A model generated the notes under the pieces. It did not search any database. It saw only the letters and a list, made by a program, of their open reading frames with translations, and was not told the origin of the DNA. DNA of 64,000 bases, from NCBI GenBank assembly GCA_024704765.1, contig JAKMXF010000309.1, positions 62,001 to 126,000 of the forward strand. The letters are read 5' to 3'. The position numbers were made by a program, and so were the translations under genes. Source of the stretch: Oopsacas minuta (lineage: Eukaryota > Animalia > Porifera). Positions 7,416 to 62,313 of this stretch are shown here, one piece after another. The stretch's first letter is position 1; each line of letters opens with the position of its first letter.

Positions 7416-7424
7416 TGCAAGAAT

Positions 7425-40029: not shown

Positions 40030-40601
40030 TCTTCCTGGCAGATCTGCTTTTAATTCCCAGATTTATTACACAGTGAATATATGTTCAATAGAAATTATAC
40101 ATTATTGAGTGCATATTTAGTATCAAATAGCTTATATCTGCATGCTCTTAAACACATTTAGAATACTTACAAAATAAACAAGAAATATTCAAAATTTGAA
40201 TCTTGAACATTAATCAGATCTTTGAGACTACAAAAATACTAATTTTTACTTGGAAATCATAGGTGCAATCCCATTCACAAATAATTATGCATGCAGCTGA
40301 AGTACTCTAAATAAAATTAATTTTGATAGATAATCCCTTCAAACATCCTCAAACACACATTTGATATTTTCAAATGTATAATTACAATTCAACATGATCT
40401 ATCATATGATTCGCTATATTTTCACACCTTTAGAATCATTGGTTCTACGGTCAGTTAGGGTAGCCTCCGAGCTGCACTCCTAGTATGTCTACTGAACGTT
40501 TTTTAGTTAACTGAATTAACTCAGAACCTTGGGTATAAGAACACATATAGCTACTCCCAAGTGCTTCTTATAACAGGTATCCAAAGAATAATTATACTAT
40601 T

Positions 40602-42134
40602 TCAATAAGCTTTAATAACAGATATATATAGTATTATTGCAAAAACACAAGCACTTATCGCCAAAGTAACTAAATACCTACAAACTATGAAGCTTTTTGA
40701 ATTTAGGATAGAAGTTTTGAGTTTATGAAATTCTTCAGCTTGTAGGTTACTAGTTTTCTTGTTGGTATTTTGTGTGACAACATCAGTAATCTTCTCCCAG
40801 TTACTACAAGAAAGTATGAGCAAGGGAATTACTGAGCAAATTGTATTTGTAACTGCGAATTGGACATAGATACTAAGAGCCTTCCATTCAACAAAATGTA
40901 TCAACAAAACTGAAGCCACTGAGCCTAAGATTATCTGAAAAATAAATTTAACTGCTGTTTGAATTCCTTGCTTACAACACGCATTCATTACTCCTTGTAT
41001 CACAACCTTTACGTCAGAATTCATTAGGAATGAGTACATTCTGAAATTCCACGTTAACTCTTTGGCAAAATTTGCATCTGTCGTGAAGAGATGACTCAAT
41101 GGTTCACTAACTGCAAATACTATGATAGTACACATTACTATTGTAAGCTGTGCTATGATTAAGTCCAATATTGCTGCTTTTCTAGCTCGTTTGGATTGAT
41201 TTTCTCCCAACAAATGTGCTACACGAACTGTTATACCACTGCCAAACCCGACGGCACCCATGTCGATTAACCACCAAATCGAGAATGTAATTGAGTATAT
41301 TGCTAGCTGTTCCTTATTGTCTGCGACCATTCCAATACATATTACAGGTAGTATTGTCGCTGGTGCTGCCCCAATAATGGTTTGAATAATTGGAACAACG
41401 GCGTATCTTGCTGTATGATACCAGTCAGAAATCAATTCAATACTCCATTCATGTGAAATTGTCTTGTGTACATGAGAGAGTTGTATGTGTGAGAATACTA
41501 AAAGTGCAATTAAGTAATTACTTATGACGTAACCAGCTGCTACACCTTGCATGCTCGTATTGTATTGAAAGATGAGAATATATTGTATTATTCCATTCAG
41601 AGTTATTCCTATGAGAAGATACAATACAGGACCCCAAACTATGTTCAATGCCTGAAGGAAACGAATACCTATTTTGTAGTACAAATACGCAGGATAACCG
41701 AAACATAGAATATCTGTGTAGCTACCACTATACTCAGCTAACTCCCAATCTTGGAATACAAGTAGACGATAGGACGGACGCTAATTAATATTGTGAATAC
41801 AGGGAAGCAGACTAGATTTGCCATTAGTAGAGCTTTGTGGAAATAGAACCCCACTAGTTTGTTTTGCTCCACACGCCTAAGAGCATAGTATGTTTACGTA
41901 TACAACAATCCCCTCAGCTATCGGATAGTTGATGATACAAATTGCTGTTTGACCGTTACACATGGCACTTAACAATATTCCAATATTATTCCCAGAGCTT
42001 CTTCCAATGAATATATTACTTAATTTCATCTGTAATCCTTCTGTAAAGCATTCTATAGAAGTTGGGAGTGCTAAGGCGAAAAGGAATACTATCTCTTCCA
42101 AGATCCAATTAGTTTTTAGTACTTCTAGTTTCAT
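40602..42134 (-). pseudogene. MATE copy M1, disrupted (stop at 41877-41879 and indels at ~41760-41870)
   Basis: N-terminal ORF ends ILCS*; the C-terminal 360 aa is almost identical to M7, including the 3' flank. Confidence 0.85.
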
Positions 42135-43126
42135 GACTATCAACTCGATTTCTTACTTGCAAACTATAATTCCTCATACGTATATAGTATTTATACCTAA
42201 GTTGACTAATTCATGAATTATTGAATAATTCATTATTCACTAGGATAAAAATGAATAGTTCTTTTTTGAATAATTCTTTTTGAATTACTAACTTTCTGGC
42301 ACCAATTTTAATGTATAAATAGGATTTGTATTATGTCGAGTTGATAAATATGAATTCTCTATATTACGAACAGTTTCTCTAGTCCCCTAGTGGTTCAGAA
42401 TTCGCGACACTGACATATATTATTCAATATCATTATGAATTGTAATGATATTGAATAATATATGTCAATTTGATTCAAAACACCATCATTTACTGGTTTC
42501 AACATTCTCAATCCAGATTGCCATTCACTGGGCATTTTCTTGGTGAGAAAGCTTCTGATAATATGATTCGAAGACTTATAATGTAATTCATACATTAATA
42601 CCTACTAATAATTCATTCTTTTTACTGTGCCGACTAGTACGTAGTCGGTCAGTATTGAAATCACTGCCTGTTTATTTTCTCAGCGTCAACGCTACTGCCA
42701 TAACTGACTAGAATCAAGGTGTTATATGATAGTTTAAAAGTTTAAGAGATTAGTCCGGTGTGATTCTCCCCTTTGCTATCCGATTGGACAGTTTTTGACA
42801 TCAGACAAACTTTTGTCTGACCTCTAGTAATATTATGAAACGAAAGGTACCAAAAATTTAACACCTTTCCAAAGAGAAAATTCTACACCTTTATACTCTT
42901 CTTGAATTATATATTGGTTATAGTATTTTGTTAAATGTATTTTAAAAATATGAATTTTATAGCACTATGTCATAGCCGTCAATACAAATATCTACGAACA
43001 CAGGTAGAGTGAAAACCAAAGTTTAATATAGTTAGCACAATAAATATGTATCGAAGAATAACTGCGCTAGAATATCACCAATTTCCAGAACAAAGTAATA
43101 TAAAGATACTACGAATATGGAGCAGA

Positions 43127-44674
43127 CTAACACAGAAATTGCTTCAGTATTAGTATAGTAGTGAAAACTGTAATAGAAACAGCTAGACAAACTAGATACC
43201 TTGATAATATAAATGCCTTTGACCTAAGGATTAGTTTAATCAAGGTAAGATTTCGAAATATACGTTGGGGCTCTTTTTCAGTGCTAGTGTTCGTTTCTGT
43301 ATTTGTCTTGACAACCGAAGCAATCTTTCTCCAATCACTGCAAAAGAGTATGAAGAGATCGATTACCATGACAAAGGCAGTATTGATCGTAACCTGAAAG
43401 TATATACTTAGTGCTTTCCATTTAACAAAATTTACTAACAAGAATGTTGCAATTGTTCCGAGAAATATTTGAAGAATGAACTTCAATACTGTTTGTATTC
43501 TTTGTTTACAACAGGCATTCATGACGCCCTGGATAATATAGTTCGAATTACAATTGAGTAAGAATGATAACCACATGATGTTCCATGCTAATTCTTTTGC
43601 AAAGTCAGTATCTGTCGTAAAGAGATGGCTCAATGGTTCGCTTATACCTAACAGTACAAGATTAACCAAAGCCAACAGCACTGGTCCCACAACGATACCT
43701 AATACTGCGGCTTTCTTTGCTCTCTTTGGGTCATCAGCTCCTAGCAAGTTACCGACACGAACAGTTATTGCACTTGAGAATCCCATGATCCCAAGGCTGG
43801 TTACCCATCCAATCGAGTATATAATAGAGTAAATGGCTAGTTGTCTCTTATCATTTGCAAACACACCAATTGCTAATATAGGTAAAATAACTAATGGAGC
43901 AGAACTAACTAAAGTTTGAACGATGGTAGAAATTGCATATTTACTTGTATGATACCAGTCAGAAATCAATTCAATACTCCATTCATGTGAAATTGTCTTG
44001 TGTACATGAGAGAGTTGTATGTGTGAGAATACCAAAAGTGCAACTAAGTAATTACTTATGACGTAACCAGCTGCTGCACCTTGTATATTCGTATTGTATT
44101 GAAAGATGAGAATATATTGTATTATTCCATTCAGAGTTATTCCTATGAGAAGATACAATGCAGGACCCCAAACTATGTTCAATGCTTGAAGGAAACGAAT
44201 TCCTATTTTATAATACAAATATGCAGGATAACCGAAACATAGAATATCTGTGTAGCTACCACTATACTCAGCTAACTCCCAATCTTGGAATACCAAGTAG
44301 ACGATAGGACGGACGCTAATCAAGATTGTGAATACAGGGAAGCAGACTAGAGTTGCCATTAGTAGAGCTCTGTGGAAATAGAACCCCACTAGTTTGTATT
44401 GTTTTGCTCCATATGCCTGAGAGCATAGGATGTTTACATACAAAGCTATCCCTTCAGCTATTGGGTAAGATATTAGAGAAATAGCTGTTTGACCAATAAA
44501 CAGAGCGCTTAACAATATTTCAATATTATTCCCAGAGCTTCTCCCAATGAATATATTACTCAATTTCATTTGTAATCCTTCTGTCAAGCATTCTATAGAA
44601 GTTGGGAGTGCTAAGGCGAAAAGGAATGCTATCTCTTCCAAAATCCAATTAGTTTTTAGAACTTCAAATTTCAT
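43127..44674 (-). CDS. MATE/SLC47-like transporter M2 (515 aa, intronless)
   Basis: LCSQAYGAKQYK, GAAAGYVISNYL, TVRVGNLLGA and QGVMNACCKQ match MATE lobe motifs; extra C-terminal helix as in animal SLC47. Confidence 0.9.
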   Translation of the reverse strand: MKFEVLKTNWILEEIAFLFALALPTSIECLTEGLQMKLSNIFIGRSSGNNIEILLSALFIGQTAISLISYPIAEGIALYVNILCSQAYGAKQYKLVGFYFHRALLMATLVCFPVFTILISVRPIVYLVFQDWELAEYSGSYTDILCFGYPAYLYYKIGIRFLQALNIVWGPALYLLIGITLNGIIQYILIFQYNTNIQGAAAGYVISNYLVALLVFSHIQLSHVHKTISHEWSIELISDWYHTSKYAISTIVQTLVSSAPLVILPILAIGVFANDKRQLAIYSIIYSIGWVTSLGIMGFSSAITVRVGNLLGADDPKRAKKAAVLGIVVGPVLLALVNLVLLGISEPLSHLFTTDTDFAKELAWNIMWLSFLLNCNSNYIIQGVMNACCKQRIQTVLKFILQIFLGTIATFLLVNFVKWKALSIYFQVTINTAFVMVIDLFILFCSDWRKIASVVKTNTETNTSTEKEPQRIFRNLTLIKLILRSKAFILSRYLVCLAVSITVFTTILILKQFLC

Positions 44675-46421: not shown

Positions 46422-47963
46422 ATGAAATACCCAAAATTGAGATGGTTTGTGGAGGAAATGGGATTTCTCATTGTGTTAGCATTACCCGCATCAATAGAAT
46501 GCTTTACAGAAGGTTTACAGATGAAATTGAGTAATATTTACATCGGGAGAATTTCAAGGAACAATTTTTCTACAATGTTAAGCGCTCTGTTTATTGGTCA
46601 AACAGCTATTTCTCTAATATCCTATCCAATAGCTGAAGGGATAGCTTTGTATGTAAACATCCTATGCTCTCAGGCATATGGAGCAAAACAATACAAACTA
46701 GTGGGGTTCTATTTCCACAGAGCTCTACTAATGGCAACTCTAGTCTGCTTCCCTGTATTCACAATCTTGATTAGCGTCCGTCCTATCGTCTACTTGGTAT
46801 TCCAAGATTGGGAGTTAGCTGAGTATAGTGGTAGCTACACAGATATTCTATGTTTCGGTTATCCTGCATATTTGTATTATAAAATAGGAATTCGTTTCCT
46901 TCAAGCATTGAACATAGTTTGGGGTCCTGCATTGTATCTTCTCATAGGAATAACTCTGAATGGAATAATACAATATATTCTCATCTTTCAATACAATACG
47001 AATATACAAGGTGCAGCAGCTGGTTACGTCATAAGTAATTACTTAGTTGCACTTTTGGTATTCTCACACATACAACTCTCTCATGTACACAAGACAATTT
47101 CACATGAATGGAGTATTGAATTGATTTCTGACTGGTATCATACAAGTAAATATGCAATTTCGACCATCGTTCAAACTTTAGTTAGTTCTGCTCCATTAGT
47201 TATTTTACCTATATTAGCAATTGGTGTGTTTGCAAATGATAAGAGACAACTAGCCATTTACTCTATTATATACTCGATTGGATGGGTAACCAGCCTTGGA
47301 ACTATGGGATTCTCAAGTGCAATAACTGTTCGTGTTGGTAACTTGCTAGGAGCTGATGACCCAAAGAGAGCAAAGAAAGCCGCAATATTAGGTATCGTCG
47401 TAGGACAAGTACTATTGATTTTGGTTAATCTAGTACTGTTAGGTATAAGCGGACCATTGAGCCATCTCTTTACGACAGATACTGAATTTGCAAAGGAATT
47501 AAAATGGAATATCATTATATTTTCATTTGCACTCAACACTAACACAAACTTTATTGTGCAGGGCGTAATGAATGCTTGTTGTAAGCAAGGAATACAAACA
47601 GTTCTGAAATTCATTTTTCAAATAATATTCGCAACAATTGCCACATTCCTATTGGCGCATTTTGTTGAATGGAAAGCACTTAGCATAATTGTGCAATTCT
47701 CAGTTGGAAGTGCATTCTGCATGGTAATCGCTCTATTTATACTCTTTTGCAGTGATTGGAGAAAAATCGCACTAGTCGTCAACAGAAACACGAAAAAGAA
47801 CACTAGCACTGAAAAAGAGCTCAAAGGGTTCTTTCGGAATCCTTCTTTGTTTAAAATAATCCTTAGGTCAAAGGTAGGTATACTATCAAGGTATTTGACT
47901 TGTCTAGCTGTTTCTATTATAGTTTTCACCAGTATGTTAACACTAAAATTTACATATTTGTAA
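46422..47963 (+). CDS. MATE/SLC47-like transporter M3 (513 aa)
   Basis: Intact ORF with the same motifs; the central ~240 aa is nearly identical to M2. Confidence 0.9.
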   Translation: MKYPKLRWFVEEMGFLIVLALPASIECFTEGLQMKLSNIYIGRISRNNFSTMLSALFIGQTAISLISYPIAEGIALYVNILCSQAYGAKQYKLVGFYFHRALLMATLVCFPVFTILISVRPIVYLVFQDWELAEYSGSYTDILCFGYPAYLYYKIGIRFLQALNIVWGPALYLLIGITLNGIIQYILIFQYNTNIQGAAAGYVISNYLVALLVFSHIQLSHVHKTISHEWSIELISDWYHTSKYAISTIVQTLVSSAPLVILPILAIGVFANDKRQLAIYSIIYSIGWVTSLGTMGFSSAITVRVGNLLGADDPKRAKKAAILGIVVGQVLLILVNLVLLGISGPLSHLFTTDTEFAKELKWNIIIFSFALNTNTNFIVQGVMNACCKQGIQTVLKFIFQIIFATIATFLLAHFVEWKALSIIVQFSVGSAFCMVIALFILFCSDWRKIALVVNRNTKKNTSTEKELKGFFRNPSLFKIILRSKVGILSRYLTCLAVSIIVFTSMLTLKFTYL

Positions 47964-48919: not shown

Positions 48920-49279
48920 ATGAAATTAGAAGTACTAAAAGATAATTGAATTTTGGAAGAAATACTATACCTTTTCGCTTTAGCACTCCCCACCTATATA
49001 GAATGCTTTACAGAAGGATTACAGATGAAATTGAGTAATGTATTCATTGGAAGAACCTCTGGGAAGAATATTGAAATATTAATAAGTGCCATGTTTATTG
49101 GTCAAACAGCATTTTCTATAATTAACTATCCGATAGCTGAGGGGATTGCAGTATACGTCAACATACTATGCTCTCAGGCGTATGGAGCAAAACAATACAA
49201 ATAAGTCGGACTCTACTTCTACAGAGCCCTATTCATGTCAGCTCTCACCTGTATATGTCGCAAACTACAAATAAAATAA
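48920..49279 (+). pseudogene. MATE copy M4: N-terminus fused in frame to the last codons of an M6-type gene; two nonsense codons
   Basis: TGA at 48947 (W codon in paralogues) and TAA at 49202 (Q). After ...SALTCI the sequence jumps to CRKLQIK*, equivalent to M6 CCKLQIE*, followed by the M6 3' flank. Confidence 0.85.
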
Positions 49280-49399
49280 TTAAAACTTGCTCGAATATAT
49301 TATCTTTGCATTTTGAGTTTTGACAATATTTTCGATATGATGTTTTAAAATTTCTAAATATCACAAGATTCTAACAGAATTTTATGTAGAAATATATTG

Positions 49400-49985
49400 C
49401 AGGGTTGTCGTAGGAATGAGAATAGTTTGGCATATAGCAGTGATGTCCAAAAATAAAAGCAAGATAGTGATTAGATTTCAACATGTTGTTAGGGGTAATT
49501 GGGTACGTAAAGTACGATTTTGAGATTTTGAGAGTCTGAAAGTTACAAATTCCCAGATTCATCATATGAATAATGATATTTTCACAAATTTTTGCATTTT
49601 TGTTCAACTGCTAGTCAAGTATAATCGAGTATGCAGATACCAATATTGACATTTCCAAATCTCTGACTCAGTGATTAATCATATTTAGACACCATTTTGC
49701 ACATATTTCAAATTGATGGTAGATAAATCATTTTCAAATGTTAGACAGGGGTAATTGCAGGGTCATTATTCAGAATTTAATCCATAGGATTTCAGGATGG
49801 ACTTGAAAATTATGTAGGGGACGAATAATATTGAATATCCTGAAACATTTTCCAGATCCAGGGCCCAAAAGCAGTCAGGGTCTGGGGCATTGCGGCATCT
49901 ACATGGGGATTAAGGTGGGCATTCCCCCCATGAAAAGAACAAAACACCTTACCCTGACCTGCACTACCAGTCTGTCGGCTGGACA
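49400..49985 (-). repeat. Copy of the cagactggtagtgcag repeat family, left arm of the MATE palindrome
   Basis: Reverse complement of 55845-56420. Confidence 0.8.
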
Positions 49986-50198
49986 CTTTTTAGTATAGCG
50001 AAGAGAGAGACTCAATATTTTTTCAAAGGGAGAGCTCCAAAATTTATCTAACGCTCTTTATACTCAATACTGTAAAATTGGTTGAGCTTATCAATCTTAA
50101 CAAAAAATGGCATTCAAATCTTTGGAAAATGAATTTACCTTGCACTCAACTCGCTAGTGCCGATTTATTCCTATAGCTACACGTAATATCATAGAATA

Positions 50199-50387
50199 TA
50201 GAGTGGAGTCTCCCATAACGGACACTCCAAGAAGCGAACAATCCCTCTACAACGGACAAACCTCCTGAAACGGAATGAATTAGTAACATAAATGTATTAC
50301 TTTAGCAGTCTCCAAGAAACGGACAAGTCCCTGAGAGGGACAGGAACGATGTCTCCAACGTGTCCGTTATTCAGAGACTCTACTGTA
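50199..50387. mobile_element. Tc1/pogo-type MITE (mirror copy 55442-55630)
   Basis: Termini agagtggagtctcccataacggacac ... gtgtccgttattcagagactctactgta. Confidence 0.7.
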
Positions 50388-50592
50388 GGTGAAAATATGG
50401 GAGTGGTGAGATTATTGGAAAGTAAGTGAGCGAGAGTGCTAGAATTATCGGAAACAGAACGCAAGCGCAAACATGGCGCTCTTCTGTCAACACAGGTACC
50501 ATGGGGGACGAGTTACCATTTATGTATTTAATCCTCATCAATTTACAAATCAGAGTACTATTAGATAATACATAGAGCAGAGTACCATAGAA

Positions 50593-52236
50593 CTATCTAA
50601 GGACCAGTATAGTAGTAAAACCTGTAATAGAAACAGCTAGACAAATGAGATACCTTGATAGTATAAATGCCTTTGAGCTAAGGATTAGTTTAATCAAGGT
50701 AAGATTTTGAAATATACGTTGGGGCTCTTTTTCAGTGCTAGTATTCGTTTCCGTATTTGTCTTGACAACCGAAGCAATCTTTCTCCAATCACTGCAAAAG
50801 AGTATGAAGAGATCGATTACCATGACAAAGGCAGTATTGATCGTATACTGAACGAAAATACTTTGTGCTTTCCATTCAACAAAATTTACTAACAAGAATG
50901 TTGCAATTGTTCCAAGAAATATTTGAAAAATGAACTTCAATGCTGTGTGTATTCTTTGTTTACAACAGGCATTCATGACGCCCTGGATAATATAGTTCGA
51001 CATACAATTGAGGAAGAATGATAACCACATGATGTTCCATTTTAATTCTTTTGCAAAGTCAGTATCTGTAGTAAAGAGATGGCTCAATGGTTCGCTTATA
51101 CTTAACAGTACTAGATTAATCAAAGTCAATAGAAGTTGACCAACGACGATACCTAAAATCGTGATTTTCTTTGCTCTTCTTGGATTATCGGCTCCTAACA
51201 AATTACCAACACGAACTGTCATAGCACTTGAAAATCCCATTGCTCCCAGACAGAAAACCCATCCAATCGAGTATAAAATAGAGTAAATGGCTAGTTGTCT
51301 CTTATCGTTAGCAAACACACCAATTGCTAATATAGGTAAAATAGCTAATGGAGCAGAACTAACTAAAGTTTGAATGATGGTAGAAATTGCATATTTACTT
51401 GTATGATACCAGTCAGAAATCAATTCAGTACCCCATTCATGTGAAATTGTCTTGTGTACATGAGAGAGTTGTATGTGTGAGAATACTAAAACTGCAACTA
51501 AGTAATTACTTATGACGTAACCAGCTGCTGCACCTTGTATATTCGTATTGTATTGAAAGATGAGAATATATTGTATTATTCCATTCAGAGTTATTCCTAT
51601 AAGAAGATACAATACTGGAGCCCAAACTATGTTCAATGCTTGAAGGAAACGAATTCCTATTTTATAGTACAAATACGCAGGATAACCGAAACATAGGATA
51701 TCTGTGTAGCTACCACTATACTCAGCTAACTCCCAATCTTGGAATATCAAGTAGACGATAGGACGGACGCTAATCAAGATTGTGAATACAGGGAAGCAGA
51801 CTAGAGTTGCCATTAGTAGAGCTCTGTGGAAATAGAACCCCACTAGTTTGTATTGTTTTGCTCCATATGCCTGAGAGCATAGGATGTTTACATACAAAGC
51901 TATCCCTTCAGCTATTGGATAGGATATTAGAGAAGTAGCTGTTTGACCAATAAACAGAGCGCTTAACAATATTTCAATATTATTCCCTGAGCTTCTCCCA
52001 ATGAGTATATTACTCACTTTCATATGCAATCCTTCTGTAAAGCATTCTACTGACACAGGTATTGCTAATACTAAAAGGAATACTATCTCTTCCAAGATCC
52101 AATTAATTTTTCGAACTTCAAATTTCATGATTCTTACTACATTGCCTATACCAACGTGAACTTTCTTTATATATGAACTATTTGATTCAATTTCTCTTGC
52201 ATAAAATTGTATTCGTAACTTTCTAAATTCTTTCAT
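50593..52236 (-). CDS. MATE/SLC47-like transporter M5 (547 aa including a 36-aa N-terminal extension)
   Basis: Intact ORF; head-to-head inverted duplicate of M5'. Confidence 0.9.
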   Translation of the reverse strand: MKEFRKLRIQFYAREIESNSSYIKKVHVGIGNVVRIMKFEVRKINWILEEIVFLLVLAIPVSVECFTEGLHMKVSNILIGRSSGNNIEILLSALFIGQTATSLISYPIAEGIALYVNILCSQAYGAKQYKLVGFYFHRALLMATLVCFPVFTILISVRPIVYLIFQDWELAEYSGSYTDILCFGYPAYLYYKIGIRFLQALNIVWAPVLYLLIGITLNGIIQYILIFQYNTNIQGAAAGYVISNYLVAVLVFSHIQLSHVHKTISHEWGTELISDWYHTSKYAISTIIQTLVSSAPLAILPILAIGVFANDKRQLAIYSILYSIGWVFCLGAMGFSSAMTVRVGNLLGADNPRRAKKITILGIVVGQLLLTLINLVLLSISEPLSHLFTTDTDFAKELKWNIMWLSFFLNCMSNYIIQGVMNACCKQRIHTALKFIFQIFLGTIATFLLVNFVEWKAQSIFVQYTINTAFVMVIDLFILFCSDWRKIASVVKTNTETNTSTEKEPQRIFQNLTLIKLILSSKAFILSRYLICLAVSITGFTTILVLR

Positions 52237-52319
52237 TTTATCATTGCTGCTATTTGGATTTGAAAACTTATTATTTTATTACATTAAACTCATGAGTTCG
52301 ATACTCAATTATAATTCAT

Positions 52320-52530
52320 TCATTTTATTTCCCCAATGAGTATATTATTCACTTTCATCTGTAGTCATTCTGTAATGCATTCTTTGACACAGGTATTCCT
52401 AATACTAAAAGGAATACTATCTCTTCAAATATTCAATTCGTTAATGAACATCTAATTTCATGATTATTACTATATTATCAATTCTAAAGTGAATTTTCTT
52501 TATATTTGAACTATTTGATTCAATTATCAT
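52320..52530 (-). pseudogene. Decayed duplicate (stub) of a MATE 5' end upstream of M5
   Basis: Reverse strand reads ...aatcatgaaattagatgttc...gaagagatagtattcc.tttagtattag.aatacctgtgtca.agaatgc.ttacaga...atgaaagtga.taatatactcattgg, a degenerate version of the M5 start. Confidence 0.75.
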
Positions 52531-52730
52531 GCACCCACATAAGTATTTTACGTTCTTTATTCCTGTTTCAATTATACTTGCATTTATTTTAAGGTTCTCG
52601 AACAGCGATGATCGTTCCCAATGATGTGCACTATTTTGTATTGAAATACCCCTACAACATCAAAAGGATACTTCAATAATTCTTAAAATGTGACCTTTCT
52701 ATTAAACTAGTACTAATTGAAGTACATTAA

Positions 52731-53083
52731 GGCGAACGATCATCGCCCGTCAGACAAACTCAATTTTTATCTGTAACCCATGAGCTCGAAACTCACTCAC
52801 AATATTTTCATTTCATATTTTCTAACTGATGATTCTACATAGGATTCCCATGGGGACGTTCCATTGGGAATCCTGTGTGAATACTGTGAAAATCGAATGG
52901 GAATCCATTGGGGAAAATGAAATCATAAAACCGATAAATGACTAGACAATAGATGAGAATTCAATATTGAAAAGAATTATATCAGTTAGAAAAAATGAAA
53001 TGAATGTATTGTAAGTAAGTTTCGACCTCATGGGTTACAGATCAAATACGAGTTTGTCAAACGGGCGATGATCGTTTGCCTCG
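52731..53083. mobile_element. Foldback element with ~110-bp TIRs in the spacer of the M5/M5' palindrome
   Basis: cgatcatcgcccgt...gtaacccatgag.tcgaaact...ttctaactgat mirrored by atcagttagaa...agtttcga.ctcatgggttac...acgggcgatgatcg. Confidence 0.75.
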
Positions 53084-53094
53084 TTAAATATGTC

Positions 53095-53460
53095 GAGCCG
53101 ACAGACTGGTAGTACAGCTCAGGGTTGTGTGGTTTTTTCTTCAGGGTGGGCATGCCCCCTTAATCCCCATATAGATGCCGCAATGCCCCAGACCCTGACT
53201 GATTTTAGGCTCCTGGATCTGATAAATATTTCAGGATATTCAATATTATTCGTCCCCTTATGTACTTCTTGTTCTATCCTGAAATCCAATGGATTGAATT
53301 ATAAATAATGACCCTGCAATTACCCCTGTCTAACTTTTGAAACGAAAATTCTAGCATCGTTTTGAATTATATGCAAAAAGTGCGAAAAAGTGAAAATTGG
53401 AATATACAAACTCGGTAACCTTTGCATTGAAGCTAAACGAAATCTCTAGTATGACTGAAT
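53095..53460 (+). repeat. Copy of the cagactggtagtgcag repeat family
   Basis: Matches 55845-56200. Confidence 0.8.
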
Positions 53461-53592
53461 AATGTGCAAAAAGTTATGATAAGTGAGTGAGTAATATACT
53501 CATTGGAGGAATGAATTGTATTGAGTATCGAACTCATGGGTTTAAGATAATAAAATAATAAGTTTTCAAATCCAAATATCTGCACTGATAAA

Positions 53593-55236
53593 ATGAAAGA
53601 ATTTAGAAAGTTACGAATACAATTTTATGCAAGAGAATTTGCATCAAATAGTTCATATATAAAGAAAATTCACATTGGTATAGGTAATATAGTAATAATC
53701 ATGAAATTAAACCTTCTAAAAATTAATTGGATCTTGGAAGAGATAGCATTCCTTTTAGTATTAGCAATACCTGTGTCAGTAGAATGCTTTACAGAAGGAT
53801 TGCATATGAAAGTGAGTAATATACTCATTGGACGATCATCAGGGAATAATATAGCATTATTGATAAGTGCTCTATTTATCGGCCAAACAGTTACTTCCAT
53901 TATCTCGTATCCAATAGCTGAAGGGAGCGCTATATACGTCAACATACTATGCTCTCAGGCGTATGGAGCAAAACAATACAAACAAGTAGGACTCTACTTC
54001 TACAGAGCTCTATTCATGTCAGCTCTCACCTACATACCAGTATTCACAATATTGATTAGTATCCGTCCTATCGTCTACTTGTTATTTCAAGATGGGGAGT
54101 TAGCTGAGTATAGTGGTAGCTACACAGATATCCTATGTTTCGGTTATCCTGCATATTTGTATTATAAAATAGGAATTCGTTTCCTTCAAGCATTGAACAT
54201 AGTTTGGACTCCAGTATTGTATCTTCTCATAGGAATAACTCTGAATGGAATAATACAATATATTCTCATCTTTCAATACAATACGAATATACAAGGTGCA
54301 GCAGCTGGTTACGTCATAAGTAATTACTTAGTTGCAGTTTTAGTATTCTCACACATACAACTCTCTCATGTACACAAGACAATTTCACATGAATGGAGTA
54401 TTGAATTGATTTCTGACTGGTATCATACAAGTAAATATGCAATTTCTACCATCGTTCAAACTTTAGGTAGTTCTGCTCCATTAGCTATTTTACCTATATT
54501 AGCAATTGGTGTGTTTGCTAACGATAAGAGACAACTAGCCATTTACTCTATTTTATACTCGATTGTATGGGTTTTTAGTATGGGAGCAATGGGATTTTCA
54601 AGTGCTATGACAGTTCGTGTTGGTAATTTGTTAGGAGCCGATAATCCAAGAAGAGCAAAGAAAATCACGATTTTAGGTATCGTCGTTGGTCAACTTCTAT
54701 TGACTTTGATTAATCTAGTACTGTTAAGTATAAGCGAACCATTGAGCCATCTCTTTACTACAGATACTGACTTTGCAAAAGAATTAAAATGGAACATCAT
54801 GTGGTTATCATTCTTCCTCAATTGTATGTCGAACTTTATTATCCAGGGCGTCATGAATGCCTGTTGTAAACAAAGAATACACACAACATTGAAGTTTATT
54901 TTTCAAATATTTCTTGGAACAATTGCAACATTCTTGTTAGTAAATTTTGTTGAATGGAAAGCACAAAGTATTTTCGTTCAGTATACGATCAATACTGCCT
55001 TTGTCATGGTAATCGATCTCTTCATACTCTTTTGCAGTGATTGGAGAAAGATTGCTTCGGTTGTCAAGACAAATACGGAAACGAATACTAGCACTGAAAA
55101 AGAGCCCCAACGTATATTTCAAAATCTTACCTTGATTAAACTAATCCTTAGCTCAAAGGCATTTATACTATCAAGGTATCTCATTTGTCTAGCTGTTTCT
55201 ATTACAGGTTTTACTACTATACTGGTCCTTAGATAG
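53593..55236 (+). CDS. MATE/SLC47-like transporter M5' (547 aa)
   Basis: Intact ORF; C-terminus identical to M5. Confidence 0.9.
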   Translation: MKEFRKLRIQFYAREFASNSSYIKKIHIGIGNIVIIMKLNLLKINWILEEIAFLLVLAIPVSVECFTEGLHMKVSNILIGRSSGNNIALLISALFIGQTVTSIISYPIAEGSAIYVNILCSQAYGAKQYKQVGLYFYRALFMSALTYIPVFTILISIRPIVYLLFQDGELAEYSGSYTDILCFGYPAYLYYKIGIRFLQALNIVWTPVLYLLIGITLNGIIQYILIFQYNTNIQGAAAGYVISNYLVAVLVFSHIQLSHVHKTISHEWSIELISDWYHTSKYAISTIVQTLGSSAPLAILPILAIGVFANDKRQLAIYSILYSIVWVFSMGAMGFSSAMTVRVGNLLGADNPRRAKKITILGIVVGQLLLTLINLVLLSISEPLSHLFTTDTDFAKELKWNIMWLSFFLNCMSNFIIQGVMNACCKQRIHTTLKFIFQIFLGTIATFLLVNFVEWKAQSIFVQYTINTAFVMVIDLFILFCSDWRKIASVVKTNTETNTSTEKEPQRIFQNLTLIKLILSSKAFILSRYLICLAVSITGFTTILVLR

Positions 55237-55844
55237 TTCTATGGTACTCTGCTCTATGTATTATCTAATAGTACTCTGATTTGTAAATTGATGAGGATTA
55301 AATACATAAATGGTAACTCGTCCCCCATGGTACCTGTGTTGACAGAAGAGCGCCATGTTTGCGCTTGCGTTCTGTTTCCGATAATTCTAGCACTCTCGCT
55401 CACTTACTTTCCAATAATCTCACCACTCCCATATTTTCACCTACAGTAGAGTCTCTGAATAACGGACACGTTGGAGACATCGTTCCTGTCCCTCTCAGGG
55501 ACTTGTCCGTTTCTTGGAGACTGCTAAAGTAATACATTTATGTTACTAATTCATTCCGTTTCAGGAGGTTTGTCCGTTGTAGAGGGATTGTTCGCTTCTT
55601 GGAGTGTCCGTTATGGGAGACTCCACTCTATATTCTATGATATTACGTGTAGCTATAGGAATAAATCGGCACTAGCGAGTTGAGTGCAAGGTAAATTCAT
55701 TTTCCAAAGATTTGAATGCCATTTTTTGTTAAGATTGATAAGCTCAACCAATTTTACAGTATTGAGTATAAAGAGCGTTAGATAAATTTTGGAGCTCTCC
55801 CTTTGAAAAAATATTGAGTCTCTCTCTTCGCTATACTAAAAAGT

Positions 55845-56420
55845 GTCCAGCCGACAGACTGGTAGTGCAGGTCAGGGTAAGGTGTTTTGTTCTTTTCATG
55901 GGGGGAATGCCCACCTTAATCCCCATGTAGATGCCGCAATGCCCCAGACCCTGACTGCTTTTGGGCCCTGGATCTGGAAAATGTTTCAGGATATTCAATA
56001 TTATTCGTCCCCTACATAATTTTCAAGTCCATCCTGAAATCCTATGGATTAAATTCTGAATAATGACCCTGCAATTACCCCTGTCTAACATTTGAAAATG
56101 ATTTATCTACCATCAATTTGAAATATGTGCAAAAGGTGTGAAAATATGATTAATCATATGATAAATCATGTAGATATAGATTTGAAATGTAAAATTTGAA
56201 ATATACAAACTCTGTAACCTCTGAATTGCAGCTAAACGAAATCTCTAGTATGGCTGAATAATTTGCAAAAAGTTGTGAAAATATGATTATTCATATGATA
56301 AATCTGTGAATTTGTAACTTTCAGACTCTCAAAATCTCAAAATCGTACTTTACGTACCCAATTACCCCTAACAACATGTTGAAATCTAATCTCTAGCTTG
56401 CTTTTTTATTTGGACATCAC
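55845..56420 (+). repeat. Copy of the cagactggtagtgcag repeat family, right arm of the MATE palindrome
   Basis: Mirror of 49400-49985; has ~100 extra bp near 56160-56270. Confidence 0.8.
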
Positions 56421-56582
56421 TGCTATGTACAAAATGATTCTCATTCCTACGACAACCCTGAAATATATTTCTACGTGGAAATTCTGTTAGAATCTTGTGA
56501 TATTTAGAAATTTTAAAACATCATATCGAAAATATTGTCTAAAACTCAAAATGCAAAGATAATATATTCGAGCAAGTTTTAA

Positions 56583-58107
56583 TTATTCTATTTGTAGTTT
56601 GCAACAAAAGATTACAAATATAGAAACACTAGCTGCCAAAAAGCATATATATCTGCACATTACGAAAGCTATTGAATGCGAGATGTTAGTGTTATTATGA
56701 GGATATTCATCAGCTGGTTCTTTTTGTGTGTCCGTATTATGTTTGACTAAAATTGTAATACTTCCCCAATCACTAGTACGGAATAAGATTAGCAATGGAA
56801 TCACTATGCAAATGACATTGGAGACTGAATATTGAACGAAGATACTTAGAACTTTCCATTCAACGAAATGTACCAACAAGACTGAAGCCATCGTGCCTAA
56901 AATTACTTGAGCCATAAATTTAACTGCTGTTTGTATTCCTTGCTTACAACACGCATCCATTACCCCTTCTATCACAAGTTTTATGTCAGTATTTAATAGA
57001 AAAGAGAATATTCTTATATTCTGAGTTAATTCTATTGCAAAACTGACATCTGTCGTGAAGAAATAACTCAATGGTTCACTAGCTACAAATACTATGATAT
57101 TACACATTACTGTTATAAGCTGTGCTATGATTAAGTGCAATATTGCTGCTTTTCTAGCTCGTTTTAGTTGATTGGCTCCTGACAAATGGCCTATACGAAT
57201 TGTGGTGGCGCTGGACAGCCCCATTATACCCATGCCGATTATCCACCAAATAGAGTATATAATTGAGTATATTGCTAGCTCTTTCTCACTGCCTGCCATC
57301 AATCCAAGGCACACTGCCGGTAGTAGTGTCACTGGTACTGTTCCAATAAAGATTTGAATAATTGGAACAACGGCGTATCTTGCTGTATGATACCAGTCAG
57401 AAATCAATTCAATACTCCATTCATGTGAAATTGTCTTGTGTACATGAGACAGTTGTATGTGTGAGAATACTAACAGTGCAACCAAGTAGTTGCCTATGAC
57501 GTAACCAGCTGCTGCACCTTGTATATTCGTATTGTATTGAAAGATGAGAATATATTGTATTATTCCATTCACAGTTATTCCTATGAGAAGATACAATACA
57601 GGACCCCAAACTATGTTCAATGCCTGAAGGAAACGAATACCTATTTTATTGCACAAATACGCAGGATAACCGAAACATAGAATATCTGTGTAGCTACCAC
57701 TATACTCAGCTAACTCCCAATCTTGGAATAACAAGTAGACGATAGGACGGATGCTAATCAAGATTGTGAATACTGGTATACAGGTGAGAGCTGACATGAA
57801 TAGAGCTCTGTAGAAGTAGAGTCCTACTTGTTTGTATTGTTTTGCTCCATGCGCCTGAGAGCATAGTATGTTGACGTAGATACCGAAACCTTCGCAAATT
57901 GGGAAGGCTATAATGCATGTGACTGTTTGACCAATGAATAGTGCACTTAACATTAATGAAATATTATCTCTTGATGTCCTTCCAATGAATATATTACTCA
58001 GTTTCATTTGTAGTCCTAGTGTAAAACATTCTATTGCATTTTGGGAGTGCTAAAACTACAAGGAGTATCATCTCTTCAAAAATCCATCGAACCTTATGAA
58101 TTTTCAT
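56583..58107 (-). pseudogene. MATE copy M6, full length but with a +1 frameshift in a 4-nt homopolymer at 58039-58042
   Basis: ATG at 58107 gives MKIHKVRWIFEEMILLVVLALP; removing one A restores NAIECFTLGLQMKLSN, joining the 474-aa ORF. Could be an assembly error. Confidence 0.7.
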
Positions 58108-58991: not shown

Positions 58992-59425
58992 TTTGATTCA
59001 ATTATCAGGCACCCACAAAAGAGTGTTTTGCATTCTCTATTCCTGTAATCAATTACACTTGGATTGTATTTAAGGTTCACTAACAGCGATGAATGTTCTG
59101 AATAATGAGCACTATGTCAACTTTTATGGGTCACTTCAATAATCCTTAAAAGGTGACCTTTCTATTAAGCTAATACAAATTGGAGTTCATCGAGGCGATG
59201 ATCGTTCACCTCGATGAACACCAATTTGTATTAGCCTAATAGAAGGTCACATTTTAAGGATTATTGAAGTATCCTTTTCATGTTGTAGGGGTATTTCAAA
59301 ACAAAATAGTGCACATCATTGGGAACGATCATCGCTGTTCGAGAACCTTAAAATAAATGCAAGTATAATTGAAACAGGAATAAAGAACGTAAATACTTAT
59401 GTGGGTGCATGATAATTGAATCAAT
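58992..59425. repeat. Imperfect ~430-bp palindrome between M6 and M7, centred on a collapsed foldback end
   Basis: Centre gttcatcgagg-cgatgatcgttca-cctcgatgaac; arms cttcaataatccttaaaa.gtgacctt.tctatta and taatagaaggtcacattttaaggattattgaag. Confidence 0.8.
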
Positions 59426-59620
59426 TAGTTCAAATATAAAGAAACTACACTTTAGAATTGATAATATAGTAATAATCATGAAATTAGATGTTCATTAACG
59501 AATTGAATATTTGAAGAGATAGTATTCCTTTTCGTATTAGTAATACCTGTGTCAAAGAATGCATTACAGAATGATTACAGATGAAAGTGAGTAATATACT
59601 CATTGGAGAAATAAAATGAA
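59420..59620 (+). pseudogene. Decayed MATE 5' stub upstream of M7
   Basis: Near-identical to the reverse complement of 52320-52530. Confidence 0.75.
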
Positions 59621-59819
59621 TGAATAGTAATTGAGCATCGACTCATGGTTTTAAGATAATAAAATAATAAGTTTTCAAATCCAAATATCTGCACCGATAA
59701 AATGTAAGAATTTATAAAGTTTAGAATAGAATTTTGCACGCAAGAGAAATTGAATCAAATAGTGAATATATATAGAAAAATCACTTAGAATTTGGAAAAT
59801 TATTGAATAGTCAATAGTC

Positions 59820-61358
59820 ATGAGAGTGAAAGTTCTAAAAACTAATTGGATCTTGGAAGAGATAGTATTCCTTTTCGCCTTGGCACTACCAACTTCTATA
59901 GAATGCTTTACAGAAGGATTACAGATGAAATTGAGTAATATATTCATTGGAAGAAGCTCTGGGAATAATATTGAAATATTAATAAGTGCCATGTTTATCG
60001 GTCAAACAGCAATTACTATCATCAACTATCCGATAGCTGAGGGGATTGCTATATACGTAAGCATACTATGCTCTCAGGCGCATGGAGCAAAACAATATAA
60101 ACAAGTAGGATTCTACTTCTACAGAGCTCTATTCATGTCAGCTCTCACCTGTATACCAGTATTCACAGTCTTGATTAGTATCCGTCATATCGTCTACTTG
60201 TTATTTCAAGATTGGGAGTTAGCTGAGTATAGTGGTAGCTACACAGATATTCTATGTTTCGGTTATCCTGCGTATTTGTACTATAAAATTGGAATTCGTT
60301 TCCTTCAGGCATTGAACATAGTTTGGGGTCCTGTATTGTATCTTCTCATAGGAATAACTGTGAATGGAATAATACAGTATATTCTCATCTTTCAATACAA
60401 TACGAATATACAAGGTGCAGCAGCTGGTTACGTCATAGGCAACTACTTGGTTGCACTGTTAGTATTCTCACACATACAACTCTCTCATGTACACAAGACA
60501 ATTTCACATGAATGGAGTATTGAATTGATTTCTGACTGGTATCATACAGCAAGATACGCCGTTGTTGCAATTATTCAAACCATTATTGGGGCAGCACCAG
60601 CGACAATACTACCTGTAATATGTATTGGAATGGTCGCAGACAATAAAGAACAGCTAGCAATATACTCAATTACATTCTCGATTTGGTGGTTAATCAGCAT
60701 GGCTGCCATCGGGTTTGGCAGTGGTATAACAGTTCGTGTAGCACATTTGTTGGGAAAAAATCAATCCAAACGAGCTAGAAAAGCAGCAATATTGGACTTA
60801 ATCATAGCACAGCTTACAATAGTAATGTGTACTATCATAGTATTTGCAGTTAGTGAACCATTGAGTCATCTCTTCACGACAGATGCAAATTTTGCCAAAG
60901 AGTTAACGTGGAATCTCAGAATTTTCTCTTTCCTACTCAATACTGATATAAAGCTTGTGATACAAGGAGTAATGAATGCGTGTTGTAAGCAAGGAATTCA
61001 AACAGCAGTTAAATTTATTTTTCAGACAATTTTAGGCTCAGTGGCTTCAGTTTTGTTGATACATTTTGTTGAATGGAAGGCTCTTAGTATCTATGTCCAA
61101 TTCGCAGTTACAAATACAATTTGCTCAGTAATTCCCTTGCTCATACTTTCTTGTAGTAACTGGGAGAAGATTACTGATGTTGTCACACAAAATACCAACA
61201 AGAAAACTAGTAACCTACAAGCTGAAGAATTTCATAAACTCAAAACTTCTATCCTAAATTCAAAAAGCTTCATAGTTTGTAGGTATTTAGCTTCTTTGGC
61301 GATAAGTGTTTGTGTTTTTGCAATAATACTATATGTATCTGTCATTAAAGCTTATTGA
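59820..61358 (+). CDS. MATE/SLC47-like transporter M7 (512 aa)
   Basis: Intact ORF with a type-A C-lobe (TARYAVV...). Confidence 0.9.
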   Translation: MRVKVLKTNWILEEIVFLFALALPTSIECFTEGLQMKLSNIFIGRSSGNNIEILISAMFIGQTAITIINYPIAEGIAIYVSILCSQAHGAKQYKQVGFYFYRALFMSALTCIPVFTVLISIRHIVYLLFQDWELAEYSGSYTDILCFGYPAYLYYKIGIRFLQALNIVWGPVLYLLIGITVNGIIQYILIFQYNTNIQGAAAGYVIGNYLVALLVFSHIQLSHVHKTISHEWSIELISDWYHTARYAVVAIIQTIIGAAPATILPVICIGMVADNKEQLAIYSITFSIWWLISMAAIGFGSGITVRVAHLLGKNQSKRARKAAILDLIIAQLTIVMCTIIVFAVSEPLSHLFTTDANFAKELTWNLRIFSFLLNTDIKLVIQGVMNACCKQGIQTAVKFIFQTILGSVASVLLIHFVEWKALSIYVQFAVTNTICSVIPLLILSCSNWEKITDVVTQNTNKKTSNLQAEEFHKLKTSILNSKSFIVCRYLASLAISVCVFAIILYVSVIKAY

Positions 61359-61482
61359 AATAGTATAATTATTCCTTGGATACCTGTTATAAGAAGCACT
61401 TGGGATTGGGAGTATGTGTTTCTATAACCGGAGTTGCAGTACAAGGGTCTCTCAAATTTAGTCCCACCAGCTAATGGTTCTG

Positions 61483-61544
61483 AGCTAAGGCACCAGGGCC
61501 ACTGTGTCAGATGTTGTTAACACAATGGCCCTGGTGCCTTAGCT
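61483..61544. other. GC-rich stem-loop (19-bp perfect stem, one mismatch, 5 more bp)
   Basis: agctaaggcaccagggcca (61483-61501) and tggccctggtgccttagct (61526-61544) are exact reverse complements. Confidence 0.9.
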
Positions 61545-61600
61545 GACTGGTATCATACAGCAAGATACTACGGCGTATCTTGCTGTATGATACCAGTCAG
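61543..61600. other. Perfect 26-bp hairpin with 6-nt loop made of MATE coding sequence
   Basis: ctgactggtatcatacagcaagatac-tacggc-gtatcttgctgtatgataccagtcag. Confidence 0.95.
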
Positions 61601-62313
61601 AAATCAATTCAATACTCCATTCATGTGAAATTATCTTGTGTACATGAGAGAGTTGTATGTGTGAGAATACTAACAATGCAATTAAGTGGTTGCCTATGAC
61701 GTAACCAGCTGCTGCACCTTGCATACTAGTATTGTATTGTAAAATGAGAATATCCTATATTTTTCCATTCAGAGTTATTCCTATGAGAAGATACAATACA
61801 GGACCCCAAACTATGTTCAATGCTTGGAGGAAGCGAATACCTATTTTATTGTACAAATACGCAGGATAACCGAAACATAGAATATCTGTGTAGCTACCAC
61901 TATACTCAGCTAACTCCCAATCTTGGAATACTAAGTAGACGATAGGACGGATACTAATCAAGATTGTGAATACTGGTATACAGGTGAGAGCAGACATGAA
62001 TAGAGCCCTGTAGAAGTAGTGTCCGATTTGTTTTGTATTGTTTTGCTCCATACACCTGAGAGCATAGAACATTTACGTATACACCGAAACCTTCAGCGAT
62101 TGGATAAGCTATCAGGCCAATATACACTTGACCGATAAACAAAGAGCTTAACATTAACGCTACATTACTCCCTGATGTTCTTCCAATGAATATATTACTC
62201 AATTTTATCTGTAATCCTTCTGTAAAGCATTCTATAGAAGTTGGGAGTGCCAAGGCGAAAAGGAATACTATCTCTTCCAAGATCCAATTCATTTTTAGAA
62301 CTTTCACTCCCAT
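61575..62313 (-). pseudogene. MATE copy M8: N-lobe only, two frameshifts, truncated after SDWYHTARYA
   Basis: ORFs 61954..62313, 61755..62072 and 61539..61724 tile the N-terminal half. Confidence 0.88.

Follow-up and report, generated by a model that had tools for sequence, protein, structure and literature searches.

A cluster of drug-efflux MATE genes in the genome of the glass sponge Oopsacas minuta is a true patchwork, and represents a clean example of a known process with no new mechanism involved. In our assessment the array has probably been shaped by sub-genic concerted evolution, acting through interlocus gene conversion together with recent inverted duplications and short patches. 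Since a homogenised core lies beside old, diverged halves with separate histories, each gene has become a patchwork, and under sub-genic concerted evolution the mosaic would be a by-product.

The window, a stretch of 64,000 nucleotides from contig C309 (JAKMXF010000309.1) without N runs, contains nine intronless MATE/SLC47-like copies, identified by tblastn and DNA alignment (Table 1). For M1 and M4 these matches cover 42134-40605 and 48920-49255, respectively. Five copies have intact reading frames, M6 lacks the 5' end, and the other three (M1, M4 and M8) are broken. Two further copies, M9 (C309:126333-127847) and M10, lie directly beyond the window end, and about 40 MATE loci were counted genome-wide, each matching as a single uninterrupted stretch. 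M1 resembles M7 (94% over 1616 bp) and carries a stop within the CSQAYGA motif, deletions of 6 bp and of 1 bp, and, at about 41751-41861, a patch of the L type. M2 and M3 are oriented head-to-head. The M4 relic retains the N-terminus up to TM3, with in-frame stops, and at 49256 this part joins the last ~22 nt of an M6-like coding sequence followed by the 3' flank of that gene. The reading frame of M5 extends to 52236, while that of its mirror copy M5' starts at 53593. In M6 the first ~35 codons are disrupted, leaving 474 aa from an internal Met. Between the genes there are only inverted repeats and a high-copy element.

Table 1 Gene copies, cores and repeat structures of the MATE array, in window positions
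Feature	Position	Strand	Description
M1	42134-40602	-	pseudogene, A-type C-lobe
M2	44674-43127	-	intact, 515 aa; a-type TM1, L-type TM3, B-type C-lobe
M3	46422-47963	+	intact, 513 aa; divergent TM1, L-type TM3, B-type C-lobe
M4	48920-49278	+	relic with internal deletion
M5	52128-50593	-	intact; c-type TM1, L-type TM2-TM3 patch, B-type C-lobe
M5'	53701-55236	+	intact; c-type TM1, Q-type TM3, B-type C-lobe
M6	58112-56583	-	Q-type TM3, divergent A-type C-lobe
M7	59820-61358	+	intact, 512 aa; a-type TM1, Q-type TM3, A-type C-lobe
M8	62313-61563	-	truncated, frameshifted inverted copy of M9
Core in M1	41413-41777		same block as M7 core
Core in M2	43947-44312		same block as M7 core
Core in M3	46778-47143		same block as M7 core
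Core in M5	51401-51766		same block as M7 core
Core in M5'	54063-54428		same block as M7 core
Core in M6	57385-57750		same block as M7 core
Core in M7	60182-60547	+	alignment columns 373-738
Core in M8	61585-61950		same block as M7 core
Inverted duplication, left arm	49256..52353		carries M5 and 1.3 kb of 3' flank
Inverted duplication, right arm	53486..56606		carries M5' and 3' flank; ends within last codons of M6
Two hairpins, back to back	61483..61600		at M8 break

M7 and M2 matched Pfam MatE (PF01554) with 103.2 and 100.4 bits, respectively, against a cut-off of 24.9 (E = 1e-29), in two stretches each. The AlphaFold2 model of M7, our reference copy for structure (pLDDT 90.7, pTM 0.89), predicts twelve TM helices in two six-helix lobes with a cytoplasmic linker between them, TM1-6 occupying residues 2-221, the linker 224-238, TM7-12 240-445 and a 13th helix 482-511. 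On this model, of the kind that the earlier note on this DNA had proposed for mapping, the main break fell exactly at the junction of the N-lobe and the C-lobe, at the first turn of TM7.

The main feature of the array, absent from that note, is a core of roughly 390 bp common to all copies. It comprises the end of TM3 to TM6 and the inter-lobe linker (about residues 117-243 of M7), and its 3' edge lies within one or two codons of the first turn of TM7. Identity in the core is 94-100% among all array copies, which nevertheless retain differences specific to single copies. The homogenisation reaches synonymous sites, core dS among array copies being 0.07-0.16, compared with 0.4-0.5 in TM1-2 and with values from 0.86 to saturated between C-lobe types, so that within the same gene pairs the synonymous divergence of core and C-lobe differs more than tenfold. 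A dispersed copy on contig C111, whose C-lobe is sister to that of M7 (82-84% identity), has a core that falls outside all eight array cores, at 90-91% identity versus 94-100% among the array. Both the low dS of the core relative to the C-lobe and the position of this dispersed copy suggest that the core homogeneity is caused by conversion, not by constraint.

Around the core the copies carry discrete segment types. The TM3 segment is of type L or Q (97-100% identity within a type, 67-73% between types), and the C-lobes of types A and B share 55-62% identity, with M8 and M9 representing the third of the three old C-lobe types in the array. All four combinations of L or Q with A or B were seen, namely L-A in M1, L-B in M2, M3 and M5, Q-B in M5', and Q-A in M6 and M7, and the linkage of L with B and of Q with A is broken only by M1, a pseudogene, and M5'. 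The a-type TM1 is found at 92-94% identity on the A-type copies M1 and M7 and on the B-type M2, a single TM1 type occurs on A-, B- and third-type C-lobes, and the mosaic does put the same N-terminal helices onto different C-lobes. The pN/pS of the whole C-lobe (0.3-0.45, with pN of 0.30-0.35) shows relaxed constraint rather than overall positive selection.

The motifs quoted in the earlier note were all present in the copies named, and its statement that no single tree fits the array was borne out by our segment-wise phylogenies, in which the DNA segment trees conflict with 96-100% support. AU tests, whose groupings were picked after the trees had been seen, rejected the alternatives with p from 1e-3 to 5e-69, and in a PHI-type permutation the observed value was reached in 0 of 1000 shuffles (z = -32.5). 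The mismatch maps showed discrete tracts whose edges are abrupt and vary between pairs. The same note had described three segments that assort independently among the copies M1 to M8. N-terminal types do occur on different C-lobe types, but the segments do not assort freely, and the pattern is instead that of a homogenised core uncoupling its flanks, plus four recent duplicate pairs and one short L-type patch spread among neighbours. The L block is confined to M1, M2, M3 and M5, adjacent copies on the left-hand side of the array, and is thus distributed by position rather than independently; a genome-wide search for an outside donor of this TM3 block found none, the block being present in those four copies only. 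The proposed TM1 type b, shared by M3 and M6, does not form a class, as these two are only 68-69% identical there, no closer to one another than to the remaining copies, and M8, which had been given a type A C-lobe, carries the third type as a truncated copy of M9. The copies listed as chimeras are true mosaics, although three of them (M1, M4 and M8) survive as pseudogenes or fragments and M6 is disrupted at its 5' end.

The same block with the same 3' edge is present in the MATE arrays of three other assemblies (ENA ERZ25072730, ERZ25072740 and ERZ25766962). In two of these, ERZ25072740 and ERZ25766962, the last codon of the block is the same to within about 3 codons, and core dS is 0.06-0.13 within an assembly but 0.3-0.74 between assemblies. 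The core DNA tree groups by assembly (support 100/100, 100/99 and 95/93), whereas the C-lobe tree groups by type across assemblies (100/100), and array monophyly on the C-lobe data is rejected (p = 8e-59). Core paralogues are therefore closer within a genome than orthologues are between genomes, while the flanks are orthologous across genomes, which is the pattern that defines concerted evolution; recombination is indicated by the PHI and AU results and by an identical run of 545 bp in M2 and M3. Between assemblies no other part of the protein is as well conserved as the core (75-85% aa), and among apparent orthologues dS is lower in the core than in the C-lobe by a factor of about 2.5, so part of the core similarity reflects constraint or a lower rate.

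Four recent duplicate pairs were recognised: M1/M7, M2/M3, M5/M5', and M9/M10 with M8. The M5/M5' inverted duplication measures 3.1 kb, with arms that are 94% identical, and the L-type TM2-TM3 patch of M5 (~51748-52009) is identical to M2 and M3. The 545-bp run, in which M3 46626-47161 and M2 43929-44464 are 100% identical, crosses the border between core and C-lobe, and outside it the pair is 71-82% identical. M8 is 100% identical to M9 over alignment columns 1-180 and breaks off 14 nt beyond the core border. Of the hairpins at this break, one has perfect 26-nt arms (61543-61568 and 61575-61600) formed by the final bases of the core and the initial ones of the C-lobe, and the other has 25-nt arms (61483-61507 and 61520-61544). 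The possibility that this second hairpin is a repeated element was rejected, as its sequence was unique in a genome-wide search.

Under sub-genic concerted evolution, ectopic conversion would repeatedly copy the central block (the end of TM3, TM4-TM6 and the linker) between array members, so that the core becomes near-identical in every copy, and the conversion tracts would end at the first turn of TM7. Past this border the C-lobes, three ancient types with 55-70% nucleotide identity, would be too diverged for pairing, and chimeric C-lobes may also face negative selection. Toward the 5' end conversion would be rarer and patchier, with discrete TM1/TM2/TM3 haplotypes remaining, and the L block would have passed among the neighbouring copies M1, M2, M3 and M5. 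Recent inverted duplications (M5/M5', M8/M9 and M2/M3, the last with a conversion tract of about 850 bp) and the decay of M1, M4 and M8 would then be superimposed. We infer that DSB repair by conversion is the molecular route and that the divergence past the border keeps it stable; an effect of the mosaic on substrate range is conceivable.

The core could also have been kept by selection as a recombination handle, the array being a modular generator that shuffles N-terminal helices and C-lobes for new substrate ranges, a strong form of the suggestion in the earlier note that lobe swapping could create new specificities. We regard this as unlikely, even though in three assemblies or more the border of the block coincides with the structural junction of the lobes, since homology-limited conversion and the old divergence of the C-lobes explain a stable border without selection for shuffling. 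One TM1 type is indeed found on all three C-lobe types and the genome does hold about 40 MATE loci, yet the L-B and Q-A linkage is broken in two copies only, one of them a pseudogene, the whole-lobe pN/pS is 0.3-0.45, and the C-lobe types have one-to-one relatives across assemblies, meaning that the lobes are stable lineages and not freely swapped modules. The break of M8, the sole truncated copy, lies within a hairpin 14 nt past the border and hints at a site prone to breakage; that the nucleotide-identical TM4-TM6/linker block of glass-sponge MATE arrays is a handle ending at such a site, where re-pairing of N- and C-lobes rapidly yields new efflux specificities, nonetheless seems improbable to us. 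If true, it would make the array a transporter-level modular counterpart of mosaic antigen gene families.

We consider it very unlikely that the mosaics are wholly or partly assembly artefacts, arising from a wrong path through near-identical repeats or from short-read polishing that homogenised paralogues. The O. minuta assembly is a hybrid made with SPAdes (k up to 99), SSPACE and Pilon (PMC10280926), the identical runs of 180-545 bp exceed k, and linkage across the 390-bp core rests on this assembly; however, the segment types and the common core are independent of phase, and the same architecture is present in three other, independently built assemblies. Reads were checked over 5,001 letters at M5/M5', using Logan contigs of 70-770 bp from four runs of one sample, probably the assembly's own data. 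These contigs break at the core borders, leaving the core unbridged, and all four runs disagree with the assembly at 51747 and 51935, but the TM1-TM3 junctions are bridged: exact contigs connect the c-type TM1 with the L block of M5 and with the M5'-specific TM2. Moreover the patch that distinguishes M5 from M5' is flanked on both sides by the near-identity of the palindrome arms, the cores retain copy-specific differences, and the window is gap-free. A history with no recombination, in which recent duplicates have very fast-diverging flanks and a constrained core, is extremely improbable. Although protein conservation across assemblies is highest in the core and C-lobe pN is high, the more than tenfold gap in synonymous divergence between core and C-lobe in the same pairs, the closer relationship of the C-lobe types to copies in other assemblies than to each other within the array (100/100), and the abrupt tract edges that differ between pairs all argue against it. 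Rate heterogeneity as the only cause is ruled out by dS and tree topology.

RHD/RHCE, the opsins and the gamma-globins are classical cases of interlocus conversion. The HMA4 metal-pump triplicate of Arabidopsis halleri has also been reported to undergo such conversion, its tandem paralogues having diverged as mosaics (bioRxiv 10.1101/2025.10.29.685298). The sponge array resembles these cases, and HMA4 in particular, in its tandem or inverted transporter paralogues, a conversion rate that is uneven along the gene, and homogenised blocks beside diverged ones, the converted part being more alike among paralogues of one genome than among orthologues. It differs from them in that the limit of the block is the junction between the two pseudo-symmetric lobes of a transporter, with a 3' edge common to several genomes, and in that the flanking C-lobes are ancient cross-genome types, not young duplicates. 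Since the sponge genes are intronless, exon-intron structure does not determine where the tracts end. In mosaic multigene families such as Plasmodium var and trypanosome arrays, recombination runs through blocks of conserved homology, and these families share with the sponge array conserved blocks between variable segments and chimeric paralogues; unlike in var- or VSG-like systems, nothing in the sponge window points to high-rate or programmed recombination, antigenic function, donor cassettes or dedicated machinery.

Our literature search found no papers on MATE gene conversion or sponge MATE arrays, and the O. minuta genome paper (PMC10280926) makes no mention of multidrug transporters or gene conversion. 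The mechanism behind the array is a textbook one. As a natural instance of conversion limited to part of a gene the array is unusually clean: a sharp block edge at a protein-domain junction has persisted over several genomes while the neighbouring domain kept its ancient types. It therefore provides a system for asking what sets conversion boundaries, be it divergence between the sequences, a hotspot of breakage, or selection against lobe chimeras, and its natural N-lobe/C-lobe chimeras can be used to ask which of the two lobes determines MATE specificity. For gene-family phylogenies in sponges the array serves as a caution, as whole-gene trees of these MATEs would be wrong.

The vertebrate SLC47 proteins MATE1 and MATE2-K are H+/organic-cation antiporters. 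Judged by their matches, the array proteins appear to be eukaryotic SLC47-type MATEs, with nearest solved relatives that are eukaryotic rather than NorM/DinF: the best is human MATE1 (9r10, E = 6e-28; further structures 9r1e, 9r1f and 9r1g), followed by plant DTX14 (4e-20), with NorM at 1e-8. The intronless genes are unlikely to stem from horizontal transfer, since all MATE loci of the genome are uninterrupted and the nearest relatives are eukaryotic MATEs. As in vertebrate SLC47, the MatE repeats are present and 12 TM helices make up two lobes, with a 13th helix added at the C-terminus, but identity is ~25-30%, and the sponge genes are intronless and occupy about 40 loci. Finally, the columns of E273, E278 and E300, the conserved C-lobe glutamates of human MATE1, correspond in phmmer alignments to G257, T262 and F286 in M7 and to G/S, T and F/Y in the array, a tentative placement given the low identity; since these columns differ in the sponge copies, coupling and substrates may differ as well.

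Alignment columns 373-738 (~390 bp) were 94-100% identical across all ten copies of the array, pseudogenes included, and the flanks of this core differed by 20-45% among the same copies. This homogenised core is the feature that the earlier note had missed. On an AlphaFold2 model of M7 (pLDDT 90.7) the helix positions place the core from the end of TM3 through TM6 and the inter-lobe linker, and its 3' edge lies in the modelled first turn of TM7, the predicted junction between the N-lobe and the C-lobe.

Positions of the MATE-like copies (window coordinates unless prefixed with contig C309) and of the M7 helices
Feature	Position	Strand	Source
M1	42134-40605	-	tblastn
M2	44674-43127	-	tblastn
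M3	46422-47963	+	tblastn
M4	48920-49255	+	tblastn
M5	52128-50593	-	tblastn
M5'	53701-55236	+	tblastn
M6	58112-56583	-	tblastn
M7	59820-61358	+	tblastn
M8	62313-61563	-	tblastn
M9	C309:126333-127847	+	array continuing past window
M10	C309:131418-132923	-	array continuing past window
M7 TM1	residues 2-46		AlphaFold2 model
M7 TM2	residues 51-89		AlphaFold2 model
M7 TM3	residues 93-129		AlphaFold2 model
M7 TM4	residues 132-164		AlphaFold2 model
M7 TM5	residues 169-192		AlphaFold2 model
M7 TM6	residues 196-221		AlphaFold2 model
M7 linker	residues 224-238		AlphaFold2 model
M7 TM7	starts residue 240		AlphaFold2 model
M7 13th helix	residues 482-511		AlphaFold2 model

With one copy as query, tblastn returned nine MATE-like stretches within 40.6-62.3 kb of the window (C309:62001-126000 of a 61.5-Mb genome in 365 contigs); a single dispersed relative of the array lies on contig C111. 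The ORFs of M2, M3, M5, M5' and M7 are intact, M6 lacks its first ~35 codons, M1 is broken by a stop and by deletions of 6 bp and 1 bp, and M8 is an inverted, truncated copy of M9. M4 (48920-49278 with its 3' remnant) is an internal-deletion derivative, its TM1-TM3 running directly, at 49256, into the final ~22 nt of an M6-like CDS, and this join coincides with the outer end of a 3.1-kb inverted duplication (49256-52353 versus 53486-56606, 94% identical) that holds M5 and M5'. Intact copies matched Pfam MatE (E = 1e-29), human MATE1 being their best solved relative (E = 6e-28), and going by family the array genes probably encode MATE-type efflux antiporters. Aligned with human MATE1, the sponge copies appear to lack its glutamates E273, E278 and E300, and their coupling and substrates may differ. 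Every array copy lacks introns, as do ~40 other MATE loci genome-wide, since each matches as one uninterrupted stretch. For an animal, ~40 loci in 61 Mb is a large expansion, with further clusters on C166, C330, C313 and C310.

Nei-Gojobori estimates from the same gene pairs gave a dS among array copies of 0.07-0.16 in the core, 0.4-0.5 in TM1-2, and 0.86 to saturated between C-lobe types. Purifying selection on the protein was rejected as the cause, since it cannot yield such a contrast between core and C-lobe at synonymous sites. The dispersed C111 copy provides a control: in the C-lobe it groups as sister to M7 (82-84% identity, support 98/97), but its core falls outside all eight array cores (90-91% versus 94-100%), and therefore the array members exchanged cores among themselves.

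A word search found MATEs 57-65% identical on large contigs of ENA assemblies, whose source taxa, judged by sequence, would be other sponges. Four loci were compared: L031 (ERZ25072730), L032 and L033 (both ERZ25072740) and L034 (ERZ25766962), three of which have three MATE genes each. Paralogues within each assembly shared 95-100% of core residues (dS 0.06-0.13) and 37-53% of C-lobe residues (dS 1.4-2.4), and core dS between assemblies was 0.3-0.74. Sliding identity plots put the 3' edge of the block at the same codon in every array (M7 residues 240-245); its start is earlier, near residue 81, in the other two. The core DNA tree grouped sequences by assembly (support 100/100, 100/99 and 95/93), and C-lobe trees grouped them by type across assemblies, the Oopsacas B type with foreign proteins P0010/12/14/22 (100/100), the A type with a second foreign set (95/87) and a third type, borne by M9 and M10, with P0023/P0030 (91/81); C-lobe data rejected a monophyletic Oopsacas array (p = 8e-59). 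This contrast between cores and C-lobes, as read from the trees, marks concerted evolution limited to a single part of the gene. In L031 and L034 the MATE genes are flanked by genes for lipoyl synthase and Tmemb_cc2: this interval holds a single MATE copy in one assembly and two in the other, where a third lies immediately upstream of lipoyl synthase.

The earlier note had proposed that three segments, which correspond to TM1, TM3 and the C-lobe, assort independently, and each motif it quoted was found in the copies named. The TM3 segment (columns 282-349) is of type L or Q, 97-100% identical within and 67-73% between types, and C-lobes A and B are 55-62% identical, all at the DNA level. Conflicting segment trees had support of 96-100%, and AU tests rejected forcing M1+M7 together on the TM3 segment (p = 5e-69), M5+M5' on columns 166-372 (p = 8e-6) and the L-type set on the C-lobe (p = 5e-16); these groupings were picked after the trees had been seen, but the rejections are by very wide margins. 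A PHI-type incompatibility statistic lay 32 SD below permutations, none of 1000 shuffles being as low. N-terminal and C-lobe histories are thus uncoupled and the chimeras are real. Some of the detail did not hold: M3 and M6, joined as TM1 type b, are only 68-69% identical in TM1 and do not form a class; M8, assigned C-lobe type A, groups with M9 instead; and the L block is confined to four adjacent left-hand copies (M1, M2, M3 and M5), a spatial distribution rather than independent assortment.

Most likely, the core is copied from gene to gene when double-strand breaks are repaired on neighbouring copies, many of which are inverted. The C-lobes would be too diverged for pairing, so that tracts could not extend into them, and any tract that did would make mixed C-lobes, likely selected against; the border would therefore reinforce itself. 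Toward the 5' end, rarer and shorter tracts would leave TM1-TM3 haplotypes, and the two ends of the gene would come to have separate histories. The chimeras are most likely a by-product: no evidence points to selection for new combinations (whole-lobe pN/pS was 0.3-0.45 for the C-lobe and ~0.15 for the core), and a role for the core as a retained handle for shuffling lobes seems improbable. The array is a further case of a known process, interlocus gene conversion, for which region-specific rates and mosaic divergence in tandem paralogues are well described, as in the HMA4 transporter triplicate of Arabidopsis halleri (10.1101/2025.10.29.685298). What distinguishes it from known cases is an edge that coincides with the lobe junction and has been retained in several genomes, next to C-lobe types that those genomes have in common. 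Our literature search found no report of interlocus gene conversion for MATE genes or sponge arrays, and the genome paper (PMC10280926) does not mention these genes.

Individual events can be seen in several copies. M2 and M3, a head-to-head pair, are 71% identical in TM1 and 74-82% over the last 570 bp, and between these diverged ends share a tract of ~850 bp, within which 545 bp are an identical run. Nearly all differences between M5 and M5' fall in columns 121-420, where the M5 sequence is that of M2/M3, and M1 equals M7 save in columns ~190-400, an L-type patch bordered by the two deletions that help inactivate M1. M8 breaks off in a perfect hairpin with 26-nt arms, 14 nt beyond the core/C-lobe border, and a second hairpin with 25-nt arms follows (together 61483-61600); both are unique in the genome. 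This single case suggests a break at the core border, and the hairpins resemble the scar of a foldback repair, located just where conversion tracts stop. Inverted repeats are also present in the array spacers. About 200 bp upstream of each of M5, M5', M7 and M8 is a degenerate ~200-bp copy of the gene's 5' end (74-85% identical; 52332-52525, 53628-53832, 59414-59607 and 62530-62724). These copies comprise the 5' leader and the first ~45 codons with frameshifts, and may represent either relics of tandem duplication or alternative first segments.

The assembly is a hybrid SPAdes assembly with SSPACE and Pilon (PMC10280926), and identical runs in the array exceed the assembler's largest k. Against a mis-join stand the unbroken palindrome symmetry around the M5/M5' patch, the absence of N runs from the window, and the agreement of the other assemblies. 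We checked 5,001 letters covering M5/M5' against Logan contigs of one sample (runs X1-X4, probably the assembly's own data), which here are pieces of 70-770 bp. In M5 the c-type TM1 is linked to the L block by contigs X4 record 28 and X1 record 4, and X3 record 22 links the c-type TM1 to the M5'-specific TM2. The contigs break off on reaching the core borders (at 54429 the loose ends have A-type letters), and phase across the core is therefore that of the assembly, which bears on M1 and M5', the only copies breaking the L-B/Q-A linkage.

At 51747 and 51935, two sites that bound a run identical to M3, all four runs have the M2/M3 letter, and at 51766-51769 X2 and X3 have three Q-type letters within otherwise L-type sequence; allelic tract ends, sequence from another copy or base errors in the assembly could each account for this. 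Word depth at 53072-53405 reached 7,400 against ~100 nearby in all runs, which marks a high-copy repeat in the spacer between M5 and M5'; loose ends are numerous at 53096-53258. X4 contigs cover the M5 gene body (50578-51340 and 51712-52102), one ending 15 nt past the stop codon, and leave the spacers uncovered, a pattern expected of RNA; M5 may be transcribed.

The array adjoins a Gal-3-O-sulfotransferase gene, and a public protein of 687 aa (P0039; window 38761-41684), in which Pfam recognises both MatE and Gal-3-O-sulfotransferase, joins the M1 remnant ORF to this neighbour, probably as an annotation artefact. Elsewhere in the window, ORFs of ~370 aa at 538-18087 form an intronless family without a Pfam match, and its members include an inverted pair (8821-10693 and 13793-15648, 89%).
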